Source: Oculina patagonica (taxonomy: Eukaryota). From it: a stretch of 64,000 nucleotides of DNA. The first letter of the stretch is position 1. Every line of letters starts with the position of its first letter. Of this stretch, positions 20,201-48,646 are shown piece by piece. The notes below the pieces were generated by a model, which saw nothing but the letters and a program-made list of their open reading frames with translations, was not told where the DNA came from and did no database searches. The stretch spans positions 7,688,001-7,752,000 of the forward strand of contig NC_135764.1 of assembly GCF_052425735.1 (NCBI RefSeq). Direction: 5' to 3'. The position numbers and the translations under genes were made by a program.

Positions 20201-23200
20201 TAAGATTCCCGCAGCCTTCAGCAAGGCCCAGCCAGAAAAATTGTTCATAGAGGTAAGCTCTGGCCAGATGGAAAAACCTAGAAATCTTTAAATTTTTATC
20301 GACCCGAAATAGGAAACTATATTTAAGAATTATTTACTCTTTTTTTCCTCTAAGAATAAGCCCGAAAAACGGCTTATGCGGACGGTAGATCGCTTTGAGG
20401 TAGTAAACATCGACACAGCGCATCCTAACAGCTAAGTTTTATTAAGCTCTAGGTAATTACTCCCGAATTAACCTAATTTTGTTTTGAATCAAAATTCGAG
20501 GGCGATTGCAAGAGCCGCTTCGTTTTGTGTTTTATGTAAACTTTTGTTGTTCGTTTGATTTACTGGCCTATTGTGCAATATAATGACACTTATTTTTCAC
20601 AAGTCTCATGGCATACAAAAGTGTAAATAATTTAAATAGAGGTCTCATGAAGGGTCAAACATTCTAAACGGACTGCATATACCCCAGAAATTATTGAATG
20701 GGTGATTTAAAAATTAATTATTCTCTAAATAAGGGGCTCGAGAGGTTTCTAAACGGAAAGAAATTTTTACTGCTAAGGAAGAAAAATTTCCATAACACTG
20801 CAAGTCGCACAGAAAAAATATTATTTGTGGACCCGAATGGGGATCAAAGCCCTGTTTAGTTTTTCAGCAGGCAGCCGCACCTGTTTAATAACAATTCCAT
20901 CTGCAAATCACCAAAACACGCCAGATCCTAATGTCGTTTCATCACTGCGACATTTTACAAATGGTAAACATCACTTTTGCAATCTATATGCGCCAAATGA
21001 AGATAAACCTGATTTTTCAGAGATATAGCCATTTATTTACAAGATTCTCGACGAGATCAATAGGAGGAATTTTAATAGTAGGATGTTTCAAAAGATAAGA
21101 AAGGGGCGTGCCAGCACACATAAAAACTCACTTGAAGAGGTTAAAGGCATTTGCGAAACCTGGGATGTTGTAGATATTGGAGAGTACTAAATCCAGAGGA
21201 AGAAAGATAACTTGGCGACAGAAGAATTTACAAATTCAAGTAGGCTCGATTTCCTCTTGATCAGCCAAAGTCTAAAAACATGTCACACCGTGGACATTGT
21301 TCCTGGATACAAAACGGACCACTCAATGGTAACCATGGAAATTACAACAAACGCTAACCCCAGAGGGCCGGGTTTCTGGAAATTGAACACATCATTTCTA
21401 TCGGACATGATTACATCTCAAAAATAAAAGACCGATCCAACAAACAAAAAACGAATATTCAAATGATCCGTTTGTCTCTCCTGCTCTCCTTTGGGAAATG
21501 ATAAAACTTAAAGTGAGAGAATCATCGCTATATTATTCCAAAGAAAGAAAGAAAAAAAGCGCTCTTCAAGAAGACGAAATAGAAAGGACCATAGCCGCGA
21601 TTGAAATAAAATTAGAAGACAAAAACATTGAAGCGAAGCAGCGGGAAGAACTTTTAGGCGTGCTGAAAAGCAAAAAAGATCAACATGAAAAGATAATAGA
21701 ATACCGAACAAAAGGGGCTATTTTAAGATCGCAGTGTCGATGGCATAATGAAGGTGAGAAAAACACCAAATATTTTCTTAATCTGGAAAAAAGACATTAC
21801 AAACAAGGAACAATAAGCCAGCTAAAAACCGACAATGACATCGTCATCACGACAGACAAAGATATTTTAAAGGAATGTCTTTCCTTTTATAAAAATCTGT
21901 ACGAGACAAAGCTAACTTCTGAACAAGATCCATCTATCATGGAAAAATTTTTCCCGGCCGAAAATACAATACATCTTTCACAAGAAGAACAAAATTTGTG
22001 TGAAGGCCCACTCACGGAGAAAGAGTGTCTCACTTCCTTAAAGCAAATGGCCGACGGCAAAACCCCTGGAACTGACGGGTTACCAGCAGAGTTCTATAAA
22101 ATATTTTGGGATGATATTTCAGGCGCTCTTCTCGCTGCTCTTAACTTTGCATACGAGAATGGGCAACTCGCAATGACACAGAGACGGGGCATAATAAAAC
22201 TTATCCCTAAAAAAGAAGCAGACCTCAAAATATTAAAAAATTGGCGGCCTTTATCTCTGTTAAATTGTGACTATAAAATAGCAGCAAAGTCAATCGCAAA
22301 AGAATCATCTACTCTTCCAAAACTTATTAATAACGATCAGACAGGATTTATTAAAGGTAGATTTATCGGCGAAAACATACGACTGATCGACAGTATTATT
22401 AATTACACCAATGACCAAAGCATCCCAGGCTTGATTTTGCTCTAGATTTCGAAAAAGCCTTTGACACACTCGAATGGTCTTTCGTTGAAAAAACGTTGCA
22501 ACACTATGGCTTTGGCCCTTCCATTCAAAAATGGATACAAACTCTTTACTGTGATATCGAAAGTTGCGTAATGAACAACGGATGGATAAGCGAATGTTTT
22601 AAAATTGAGAGAGGGTGCGGCAAGGCTGCCCTCTTTCTCATTTTATTTGTCCTTTCCGTCGAAGTTTTAGCTAGCGCAATCCGAAGTGACCAACATATTA
22701 AAGGAATTCAGTCAACCAAAAAGAAATCAAATTAAGCCAATATGCTGACGACACGACATTAATCCTTGACGGCTCAAAAGACGCGTTTGAAACTTCGCTC
22801 GATGTTATCGGAAATTAGCAAGATTTCTGGCTCAGACTCAATAATAAAAAAACCGAAGCATTGTGGATAGGTTCAAAAGCAAGAAGCCAAGACATTATGT
22901 TTCCCGAGAAAGGTTTCAGATGGCAGCATTTAAAAATCAAAACATTAGGGTGTGGCTCTCAATAGAACCCGAATTAACGGTAAAGCTGAACTTTAACGAA
23001 AAAAAGAGAAAGTTCGAAATTTACTTAGAAACGGCAGTACCGAAGGCTAAGCTTACTTGGAAAAATCGCTATATTAAAGAGCCTAATTGCTTCACAGCTT
23101 GTTCATGTTCTTTCCCCTCTCCCAACAAACCACCAGGCTATCAAAGAACTGAAGGAGCTTTCTATCATTTCTCTGGGACGGGAAACCCGATAAAATTAAA

Positions 23201-31600: not shown

Positions 31601-34600
31601 ATGGATGTCTTACCTAGCAGCCGTTTCCTCGGCCTCGTAGCGTTTGGCTGCGGGGCATATGTAGCGAGGGAATTGTGCGTAATGTATCTTGTGAAGCCGT
31701 GGAAAAGGGAAGAAAATGGTTATGAAAGACCGCCTCCTCGAGGAAACTTCCCCGACTTACGCCTGCATAACAACCTGATGGCGAATCATCTTACACCCGA
31801 TCTGTACGAATCGCTAAGGTAAAATTGCTGCATATAGAGAAGTAATAAGGAACTAGTTATTGCTAGTATGCGTTTCGAGCTGTTCAGTGTTTATTTGGAA
31901 TATTGTCAAAAAAGTTAACTTTGCCCTTTAATTTCTATTATTGGATGATATCAAATTCAAAGCATTGGCAGGCAGGCAGGCGAGAAAAAATAAGAAATAT
32001 GGCAAATGGAAGATATATTTTTGATGAAATTCTAAGAACTAAAATTGAAACAATTTTTACTGTTAAGTGTCGTTTTCTATGTGAAGCATCACGTCTCTAT
32101 GGCCTACTTAGTAAAGTAGTTTTAATTAATTGGTCGATATTGATATTGCATTATACATTTTACTTTTTATATTCGCTTCATGCCGTCTTGGTAACGTTAA
32201 AATATGGTTCTGCTCATGCAGTTCTGCACATCGATTTTGAATAAGTTAAAATTTCACTAAATTGATTAAAAAATGACAAAAAAGGCAAAATTAAAAGCGT
32301 GTTAGAACAGATCTTAAAAATTATCATATGGCACAAATACGTCTTCGTTTCCTTTGAAAACTGAAAGTTTCTAGTTTAATTTCGGTTTTGTGTTCGTTAG
32401 TATTCGCGTTATAAAAAAGAGCAAAGAAAAAAGCTTTAAATTATAATTGTTTTTCATTTTCTGGAAAACAACTGACAATTTTTTTTCGAAAGTTTCCTCC
32501 ATAAAAACGAAAGGTAGGTTGGCAACCGGAACAAAAATCCATCTGATATGACGCTTTCAGTTTAAGTGTTTTGGTATGAAGCGGAAAACATTTTCAATTC
32601 GTTGAGAAACAAAACTATCTGCTGTAAAGAATAATTAAGTCACAAGCACTTCAAAAATACGCGCAGGAAGTTAAAAAGGTCCGCTTGACAAATACTATTA
32701 ATACTTTTGGGGCTTCGTAACTATGTTTAAAAATCCACATTCTTTGTTTATTATAGATATTGTTCCTCGATATAAAACATTTTCTTTTTTAAATTTATCC
32801 TTTGTGACAAACAAAAGAAAAACCGAGTAGAAAATATTCAGAATAGCTTGGCCTACATAAAAACGTAGCAATCATAGCAATAAAACACTCGCGACTGAAA
32901 AAGTCACAAAATGAGTATTCTCAAATACTCTGTAATGACATTTTAAAGTAACACTAATGTTTGAATCTCTAATAAACCATTTCCAAGATTTTAAACATAA
33001 CTTTGTTTTTAACTCTTTAAAAAATACAACCGTGAGGAGTGAGCATTAAAATGTCGTTTTTCATCCATTTCTCTGATTTTAAAAATCTGAACATGAAGGC
33101 AACTGACCACTTCCAGCGGTTTCACTCTTGACCAAGCCATTCAAGTCGGCGTGGACAACCCGGGGGTGCCATGGCAACGCTCATCCGGGATCATAGCAGG
33201 AGACAGAGAGTCATACGAAGTGTTTGCGCCTTTGTTTGACGCAATTATTGAGGAATATCATGGACACAGGAAAAATGATTTTCACCCGAGAGACATGGAC
33301 AGTCGAAAAATTATCGATGGTAAACTGAAAAGCGAATACGTTTTGTCATGTCGGTTGCACACGCGACGCTCCATCCGGGGATATTGTTTGCCAGCAGCAT
33401 GCTCCCGGGGCGCTAGAAGGAACCTGGAGGGCCTCATTCGTATGGTGTTCATGCGACTGGGAGGTGAGTGGAGTCAAGGTGAGGGACATTAACAGGGTGT
33501 TTTTATGTAAGACTAAGAAAGGAGTACCTTGTAAAAGGAGCTTTGTGAATAATCGGCAAGAATTTATTACCTGAAACAACCCAATAAATATTACAAAATA
33601 TTGATAGTGTTACTCGATGAAATTAATGTTCTTGGTTATTTCCAGAAAATTATACAAAACTATTGCATTCCGATCAAGCTTGCGAATTGGTTAGAAACGC
33701 CAGGGTAGTCATTCCAAGATAGACGTATAATTTAGGATGGATCTTTAAATAAGTTAAACTTACTAAAGTCAAAATAGGTTTCCTGAAAACACTTTAGGTG
33801 TTTTACTATCTCTTTAATTTGCTACATGGGGCCCCGCTGTGATAATTCCATTTTCTTTTATCCAGTAGTCCATTCATATTTCTCTTTATTTTTTTATATG
33901 TCGGCTGTTTTATATGTCAGAAAGTATATGTCCAGCAAATGTAAATATGTTCGATTCTAAGACATAATATGACACCGTGAGTTTCCAAACTTGCCTTTGT
34001 TGTTGCATTTTCTTTTGTAGGTGAGTTTGAAGGTGAATACAAACCCATATCCGAGTTTACAGATAGAAGACTCAGTGTATTTAATGTTTCATCGCAACCC
34101 ACGTCACCACTGATCACGTGCTCAGGGCGTGCTCGTGACTGGCCAGAGTCACGTGGTATATTCCGCAATAAAGACAATACGTTCGTTGTGTTTGTCAATG
34201 AAGACGATCACGTGCAATTCAGGTGCTTTGACAAAGGAGGCAACTTGCAAGGTGTGTTTGATAAGTTGGTCAGGGGAATGGCCGCGTTTGAGCGAGAGCT
34301 GAAGAAGTCTGGGGAAGAGTTCATGTGGGACGATCACCTTGGTTACATAGTGTCGGATCCAATCTATCTCGGCACAGCGCTTGACGTCAGAGTGCGAGTT
34401 AAACTTCATCACCTTTCCACGGTAAGAAGTCGTGCTGTTCTACATGCAACGTCTGTTACAGTTTGATAGCAACATGTCTGGTGGGCCGCGTGTCTATAGT
34501 GCGCATTCATTGAAAGTATGACTAATTGTCCAGGTACAGGTCTCCCCTGGAGAATTAGTCATACTTTCAAAAATGGCATTCAATACAAAATAAACCAGGA

Positions 34601-48486: not shown

Positions 48487-48646
48487 NNNNNNNNNNNNNN
48501 NNNNNNNNNNNNNNNNNNNNNNNNNNNNNNNNNNNNNNNNNNNNNNNNNNNNNNNNNNNNNNNNNNNNNNNNNNNNNNNNNNNNNNNNNNNNNNNNNNNN
48601 NNNNNNNNNNNNNNNNNNNNNNNNNNNNNNNNNNNNNNNNNNNNNN
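48487..48646. other. Assembly gap (160 N)
   Basis: Run of N. Confidence 1.

Follow-up and report, generated by a model that had tools for sequence, protein, structure and literature searches.

The 64,000-nucleotide window analyzed here (Oculina patagonica, NCBI RefSeq assembly GCF_052425735.1, contig NC_135764.1, positions 7,688,001 to 7,752,000 of the forward strand), drawn from contig 7 of a genome of 529 Mb, contains a six-exon gene on the + strand at window positions 31601-36478, which codes for a 415-residue protein of the creatine kinase (CK) fold. The protein has 100% identity to P0273, named at NCBI "creatine kinase M-type-like isoform X2 [Oculina patagonica]". We tentatively favor the view that this protein is not a kinase but an expressed, conserved pseudoenzyme, in which the old active-site cleft has been rebuilt as a non-catalytic docking site, with arginines displaced by two residues along three β-strands as a lineage-specific tuning of that site. 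The features which mark it as a pseudoenzyme are the loss of catalytic residues, purifying selection, spliced transcripts and a clade of orthologues spanning Scleractinia and Actiniaria. In the literature searched, neither a pseudoenzyme of the phosphagen-kinase fold nor this hexacoral protein has been described.

Inspection of the catalytic residues provides the first line of evidence. CK numbering, which counts the initiator methionine (as checked on the 381-residue CKB), is used below, with the protein's own numbering in brackets. The cleft arginines of CK are R96, R130, R132, R135, R236, R292 and R320, with R130, R132, R236, R292 and R320 binding phosphate (PMC12387690), and R341 is an additional cleft arginine (PMC12467219). 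Five of these eight are gone in the Oculina protein, namely R96 (now Y126), R132 (H160), R236 (Q260), R292 (D316) and R341 (T365), while R130 (R158), R135 (R163) and R320 (R344) are kept; among the five phosphate-binding arginines, only R130 and R320 are retained, and position 320 is itself occupied by lysine in some corals and by cysteine, serine or threonine in the anemones. Additionally, C283 is replaced by D307, E232 by D256, S285 by isoleucine, N286 by tyrosine and D335 by tyrosine, with the sequence SDPIYLGT standing for the CPSNLGT motif of CK and NEDDH for its NEEDH motif. Residues E231, D233 and H234 of CK are retained, as are its RDWP and LGT motifs. On account of the loss of the five cleft arginines, of Cys283 (now Asp) and of Glu232 (now Asp), phosphagen kinase activity is very unlikely, as judged from the sequence.

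The gene itself is expressed and under strong purifying selection. All five introns are absent from contigs in three public runs, the joints of which coincide exactly with the modeled junctions, and one spliced contig of 1608 nt has only 0-1 mismatches in each exon piece. The same locus is found as unspliced DNA in a fourth public run. Expression is read here from intron-free contigs, none of the runs being recorded as RNA. Among five coral coding sequences, namely that of Oculina and four taken from intron-free orthologous contigs of other corals, dN/dS is 0.07-0.13 in all ten pairs. The notion of a decaying CK duplicate, i.e., a pseudogene, which the number of lost catalytic residues and an exon that at first seemed absent might have encouraged, can for practical purposes be set aside: the frame is intact, the splice sites are canonical throughout, both small exons were recovered, orthologues extend across complex corals, robust corals and anemones, and the reading is refuted by the spliced contigs together with a dN/dS of about 0.1. 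A second 5' donor at position 33478 lies 15 nt past the end of exon 2 and in one run lengthens the protein by five residues (E-W-S-Q-G); the Desmophyllum and Acropora models, like another coral contig, have this insertion too, and the alternative splice after exon 2 appears to be conserved.

Relative to a consensus of 29 CK sequences, the protein core has gained 25 arginines and lost six conserved ones. The gains include arginines in place of G134 (R162), I238 (R262), G294 (R318), H296 (R320) and G321 (R345). An earlier note on this DNA, concerned with a stretch that takes in part of exons 2 and 3, had proposed that three lost active-site arginines each reappear exactly two residues downstream on their β-strands. 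All three pairs are present as it described them (RVRTGRS to RLHTRRS, DHLRVIS to DHVQFRC and GLRAGVHIK to ALDVRVRVK). The same register is recovered by phmmer against the creatine kinases of the PDB, by MAFFT alignment with orthologues and CKs and by a CK-profile hidden Markov model (HMM), without alignment gaps within about 10 residues of any of the three sites; the different strand register that the note had allowed for is found in none of them. The placement on β-strands likewise holds in the AlphaFold2 (AF2) model, where the sites fall within the continuous strands 154-163, 259-266 and 315-322, with a predicted local distance difference test (pLDDT) of 88-93 over the 10-residue block.

Of the four catalytic arginines that were lost, three thus have a gained arginine exactly at +2. 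The solvent face of a β-strand recurs every two residues, such that positions i and i+2 share a side and fewer positions are available to choose from. When the 25 gained arginines were scattered at random across the 361 core positions, a new arginine at +2 of no fewer than three of these four was obtained with p=0.0013; with the offset free to take any one value from -4 to +4, p was 0.0087. This is a post hoc test that takes no account of the alternation of polar and apolar residues along strands, which makes the true p somewhat larger. The rule also fails at R341 (now T), which has no new arginine within four residues, and at R96 (now Y), which has one only at +4. The +2 pattern is real, yet only moderately improbable. 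It could have arisen by coincidence on a relaxed surface, with solvent-facing sites becoming free after the end of catalysis and being filled through a family-wide shift from lysine to arginine together with single-nucleotide paths to arginine, the +2 spacing then being nothing other than strand periodicity. This we consider unlikely. All four gains, from glycine, isoleucine and histidine, could be reached by a single nucleotide change from codons commonly used for the CK residue, as reasoned from the codons, and the family is enriched in arginine as a whole, both of which suit such an origin; however, the permutation probabilities of 0.001-0.009 already take the arginine enrichment into account.

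The distribution of these residues among orthologues gives the pattern its phylogenetic depth. Full-length orthologues were recovered from stony corals, in Stylophora, in Desmophyllum and in coral transcript contigs, one resembling the partial Acropora digitifera model and one resembling Stylophora, and from three anemones, Nematostella, Actinostola and Actinia. Matches from octocorals and hydrozoans are canonical CKs. When the Nematostella protein was the sole query, all matches ranking below itself were true CKs; the coral orthologues surfaced only with region-restricted and full-length queries. Two of the models look incomplete: the Desmophyllum model P0278 is short of 16 residues around the strand R130-R135, and the Nematostella model P0049 lacks 19 residues corresponding to exon 5, which are present in the other two anemone models. 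The seven coral and three anemone sequences are monophyletic (100/100) and are set apart by a stem of 1.22 changes per site. In a quick tree this clade lies beside the cnidarian mitochondrial CKs (98 in the Shimodaira-Hasegawa-like approximate likelihood ratio test, SH-aLRT), and in a careful tree it falls in a polytomy. It is probably a hexacoral-specific CK paralogue derived from the mitochondrial-type CK lineage.

R132, R236 and R292 are missing from all ten members of the family, and their loss is therefore old; by parsimony, R134 and R238 came later, on the stony-coral stem. At position 134, arginine stands in 6 of 6 stony-coral sequences, against W, L and H in Nematostella, Actinostola and Actinia, respectively; at position 238 arginine is found in 22 of 22, against I, V and V in the same anemones; at position 294 there is arginine in 22 of 24 and lysine in the other two, with R, K and Q in the anemones; and at position 296 arginine occupies 23 of 24, as well as all three anemones. 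The conservation of Arg134, 238, 294 and 296 on which the earlier note had staked its proposal thus stands in part: they are fixed or nearly so in stony corals, and 296 is an arginine in the anemones too, but 134 and 238 have no arginine there and 294 varies between R, K and Q. A coincidental origin is in keeping with the lack of R134 and R238 in anemones and with a conservation among corals that does not exceed the background. Set against it, the arginines span the deepest split among stony corals despite synonymous codon turnover (the codons of R162, R262 and R320 have changed synonymously in corals with the arginine maintained) and in a gene with a dN/dS of about 0.1.

At sites that are invariant in CKs, all ten members share F68W, T108R, P144A, M207R, T282S, C283D, H296R and G321R, and T108R, M207R, H296R and G321R constitute the family-wide new arginines. 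As far as the alignments tell, it is this invariant set from F68W to G321R which defines the family and not the +2 arginines, the latter being a lineage-specific second layer outside the family core.

These two layers may be accommodated in a model wherein the old active-site face of the β-sheet would have been rebuilt and not abandoned, with basic residues at new positions maintaining its count and net charge. In the first layer, the canonical arginines would have disappeared, and D283, R296, R321 and R207 have been acquired, in the ancestor shared by anemones and stony corals. In the second, on the stony-coral stem, R134 and R238 would have been added and R294 fixed, amounting to one i+2 step along three strands. 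The cleft would then most likely be a putative docking site without catalysis, where either an acidic partner or an anionic ligand could bind, and the dimer discussed below might act as a sensor or scaffold. The +2 arginines could tune this docking site in one lineage and would not be a founding feature of it.

The charge of the old cleft face was compared over 19 positions, comprising alternating residues of the three strands along with 283 and 319-322. Canonical CKs have seven arginines and lysines and one acidic residue on this face, for a net charge of +6; the anemone proteins have 6-7 basic and 1-2 acidic residues (net +4 to +6), and the stony-coral proteins nine basic and three acidic residues (again net +6). 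Arginines on the face number 6-8 in stony corals, as opposed to five in CK. The basic count and net charge being preserved, the idea that the basic character of the face has been redistributed among different residues in each lineage rather than lost is supported. The earlier suggestion that the basic cluster appears relocated, not simply lost, is to that extent borne out by the retained basic count and the net +6; a concerted +2 relocation would go beyond these counts, and the anemones have no arginine at 134 or 238.

The same counts bear on the possibility of a self-plugged cleft, in which the new arginines would pair with D307, D316 and D256/D257, fill the empty site and stabilize a ligand-free fold, leaving the protein to work only as a scaffold in dimeric form or alongside active CK subunits as their partner. 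We regard this as possible, if rather doubtful. Stony corals have gained two acidic residues alongside two extra basic ones on this face with the net charge remaining at +6, D307 is invariant in the family, and D316 and R318 stand at i and i+2 within one strand, all of which such plugging would explain, as it would the predicted retention of the CK-type dimer interface and the short, disordered adenine-loop segment described below. Nevertheless, the anemone orthologues carry the acids without R134 or R238, such that pairing cannot be obligatory, and in all members a net charge of +4 to +6 is left unneutralized, which better suits an external anion.

At the level of the fold, Pfam profiles recover PF02807 on exon 2 (64.5 bits) and PF00217 on exon 3 (88 bits), and the full-length orthologues have both domains. 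The AF2 model (pLDDT 79.6) matches solved CKs with Foldseek template modeling (TM) scores of 0.86-0.90, normalized to the target length, and the best 49 Foldseek matches are exclusively creatine, lombricine, glycocyamine or arginine kinases, with TM scores up to 0.90. On this model, the CK fold is retained. An N-terminal extension precedes it, poor in basic residues and with a low-confidence helix predicted at residues 10-30. The predicted assembly is a CK-type homodimer, with an interaction prediction score from aligned errors (ipSAE) of 0.56 against 0.00 for the best control, a partner pLDDT of at least 86 and at least 57% of the contacts common to the runs; the mark applied is passed by 21 of 30 solved homodimers and by none of 23 solved single chains. 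The predicted interface residues (48-52, 84-92, 175-180 and 227-237) are the equivalents of those around D53, R148 and W211 of CK, in regions known to form the CK interface. Further, the segment containing the adenine-binding H191 of CK is shorter by four residues, and residues 210-234 are modeled as disordered (pLDDT about 36); in the model, this shortened and disordered segment argues against CK-like nucleotide binding.

We take the strand 130-135 to be antiparallel to strands 232-240 and 290-298, going by the ligand contacts in the transition-state complexes of CK and arginine kinase. On this geometry, the shift at 134 would point to the side of the guanidino substrate, and those at 238, 294 and 296 to the ribose/adenine side, where R262, R158 (retained) and R318 may come to lie in a single row across the sheet. 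It is relevant to a more radical interpretation, namely that the displaced arginines are migrated catalytic residues which rebuild a shifted phosphate site for nucleotide binding or phosphotransfer, perhaps with a new substrate. Two atypical or "pseudo" kinases, WNK1 and POMK, provide a precedent, in that structure and mutation have proven a migrated residue to be catalytic (PMC10211241), and the retention of R130, R135, R320, E231, D233 and H234, as well as the 6-8 arginines on the stony-coral face compared with five in CK, would be compatible with it. The resemblance to WNK1 and POMK consists in a charged residue missing from its usual site with one of the same type at a neighboring position of the sheet. 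Their fold, however, is that of protein kinases, unlike the CK fold of the Oculina protein, which is known from sequence and a model, additionally lacks several other catalytic residues and has two of its three shifts limited to one order. Retained catalysis is unlikely since many other catalytic residues are gone: C283, E232, R341, R96, D335 and the H191 segment are all lost or remodeled. The anemone members are conserved though they have no migrated arginine, and under the presumed antiparallel geometry the shift at 134 runs opposite to those at 238 and 294. Migration of catalytic residues is hence very improbable. A version confined to stony corals, in which the displaced arginines together with R130, R135 and R320 would rebuild a phosphate site, yielding an atypical binder of nucleotides or phospho-metabolites or a phosphotransferase for a new substrate, with the anemone proteins as a dead intermediate, also strikes us as quite improbable.

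Comparison with known phosphagen kinases and their degenerate relatives helps to place these features. With creatine kinase, especially the cnidarian mitochondrial type (PDB 1qk1, 4z9m and 1vrp), the Oculina protein shares the two-domain PF02807+PF00217 fold at 43-45% identity and an N-terminal extension with a hydrophobic segment; it differs at R96, R132, R236, R292, R341, C283, E232, S285 and D335, and the coral/anemone clade as a whole differs in its long stem, its arginine enrichment and the newly invariant D283, R296, R321 and R207. Medusozoan "Clade 1" sequences have been reported, with no function given, as phosphagen-kinase-related and devoid of CK binding motifs, an absence which could reflect incomplete assemblies (PMC13679545). 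By this description they resemble the present family as cnidarian CK-like proteins without substrate-binding motifs, and they belong to another subphylum.

The generality of the +2 rule was gauged on 514 phosphagen-kinase-like domains outside the hexacoral family. For 132/134 an arginine at 134 is present in 32 of 129 domains without R132, versus 3 of 305 retaining it, a contrast that tells against coincidence. For 236/238 there is no link among these domains, arginine being found at 238 in 1 of the 136 lacking R236, and for 292/294 the link is weak (7 of 147 without R292 versus 2 of 315 with it), as is that for 292/296; these low counts are what coincidence would lead one to expect. In other degenerate domains, then, the +2 rule holds for 132/134 and not for 236/238. 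The 32 domains with R134, themselves degenerate and perhaps not independent of one another, sit in 23 long multi-domain proteins. An apparent link between Asp283 and Arg134 across the other degenerate domains vanished when only those without Cys283 were considered (p=0.37).

Degenerate phosphagen-kinase-like domains of this sort, in long protist-type proteins (e.g., P0030, P0081 and P0140) and at the genomic loci L012 and L015/L016 of Oculina, resemble the hexacoral family in the wide loss of catalytic residues. Among these domains, loss of R132 with arginine at 134 ("x-R-R-N") occurs in 32, and C283 is replaced by aspartate in 21. Together with L012 and L015/L016, they form separate, very long branches outside the hexacoral clade; in these the 236/238 pattern is missing and that of 292/294 weak. 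Proteins P0006-P0140 include many of 600-2600 residues with two to four phosphagen-kinase-like domains in which catalytic residues are substituted; the few that are named come from protists such as Mallomonas. L012 (G000:C4:21284654-21285064) is a degenerate CK-like exon with R236 changed to K and C283 to R. L015 (G000:C4:24301881-24302204) and L016 (G000:C4:24283505-24283810) are degenerate CK-like exons about 18 kb apart and 92% identical, with E231/E232 changed to F/L, R236 to K in L015 and Q in L016, C283 to S and R292 to E. Canonical phosphagen kinases are abundant in the Oculina genome (loci L001-L011 on C10, C11, C12, C14 and C7). Among them, C10 has contiguous open reading frames (ORFs) for multi-domain CKs, C14 a head-to-head pair of CK genes of the mitochondrial type, C11 a CK of the cytoplasmic type and C12 arginine kinase domains that are Anthopleura-like.

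Several observations weigh against the interpretation of a rebuilt docking site. The careful tree does not settle the sister group of the hexacoral clade. Among stony corals 60% of the alignment columns are invariant, and the conservation of the four arginines equals this background. Arginine makes up 7.7-9.9% of residues in the family versus 5.3-6.7% in CKs, and composition may account for some of the gains. The 19 positions of the cleft face were picked by us from strand alternation and not measured, and the direction and clustering of the arginines are likewise read from the periodicity of strands and a presumed CK geometry. Finally, the homodimer prediction may have passed through the model's memory of solved CK dimers.

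If the protein is a pseudoenzyme as proposed, the phosphagen-kinase family would join the catalogue of folds with such members. The gene is annotated as a creatine kinase in at least five hexacoral genomes, and its residues contradict CK activity; inferences on energy metabolism that count it as a CK would therefore be wrong. The clade additionally offers a dated two-step natural experiment, with the anemones showing the catalytic arginines lost and a few new basic residues gained and the stony corals three more, one strand-step off. It allows one to ask whether an electropositive cleft persists for ligand binding after catalysis dies.

The coordinates of the gene are given in Table 1. Four of the exons (1, 2, 3 and 6) were derived from stop-to-stop frames and reading of splice sites, and the two small exons with the help of the partial Acropora orthologue P0005. 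A missing exon for CK residues 305-345 had been suspected, there being no ORF of at least 35 residues in 34423-36340, and this was overturned by the two small exons.

Table 1. Exons and key codons of the CK-like gene (window positions)
Feature	Position	Strand	Content	Basis
Exon 1	31601..31818	+	Start codon, hydrophobic N-terminal extension, beginning of N-terminal CK domain	GT donor; spliced contigs join 31818 to 33099; identity to P0273
Exon 2	33099..33463	+	Remaining N-terminal domain and strand 154-163 with R158, H160, R162, R163	PF02807 match, phmmer alignment, joints 33463/34021 and 33478/34021
Codons H160-T161-R162	33358..33366	+	Pair one: CK R132 lost, G134 to R	phmmer alignment, AF2 strands, codon coordinates
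Exon 3	34021..34421	+	Core of catalytic-type domain: NEDDH, Q260/R262, D307, D316/R318/R320/K322	PF00217 match, phmmer alignment, spliced contigs
Codons Q260-F261-R262	34215..34223	+	Pair two: CK R236 lost, I238 to R	phmmer alignment, AF2 strands, codon coordinates
Codon D307	34356..34358	+	Asp in place of the reactive Cys283 of CK; invariant family-wide	Alignments
Codons D316-V-R318-V-R320	34383..34397	+	Pair three: CK R292 lost, G294 to R, H296 to R	phmmer alignment, AF2 strands, codon coordinates
Exon 4, 55 nt	34733..34787	+	K343-R344-R345 (CK K319, R320 kept, G321 to R)	Orthologue P0005, AG/GT sites, joints 34421/34733 and 34787/35180
Exon 5, 71 nt	35180..35250	+	Remodeled flexible loop, strand 357-362; T365 for CK R341	Orthologue P0005, AG/GT sites, spliced contigs
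Exon 6	36341..36478	+	C-terminal helix, stop codon	Spliced contigs, model identity

The genomic neighbors, a reverse-transcriptase fragment at window positions 21498-22445 (RVT_1, slightly under the Pfam cut-off) and a 355-residue ORF with a full FAM124 domain at 45426-46493 (177 bits), gave no functional lead. A run of 160 N lies at 48487-48646. Within the gene, stretches of intron 5 (35775-36290) and intron 4 (34920-35260) have contig depths ranging in each of the four runs from the hundreds up to tens of thousands, show numerous odd joints, and are probably high-copy interspersed repeats. Intron 3 contains an inverted repeat (34510-34570) with 25-nt arms that are 96% complementary and an 11-nt loop, both strands of which translate alike; an exon look-alike at 34500-34585 proved to be this hairpin and not coding sequence.

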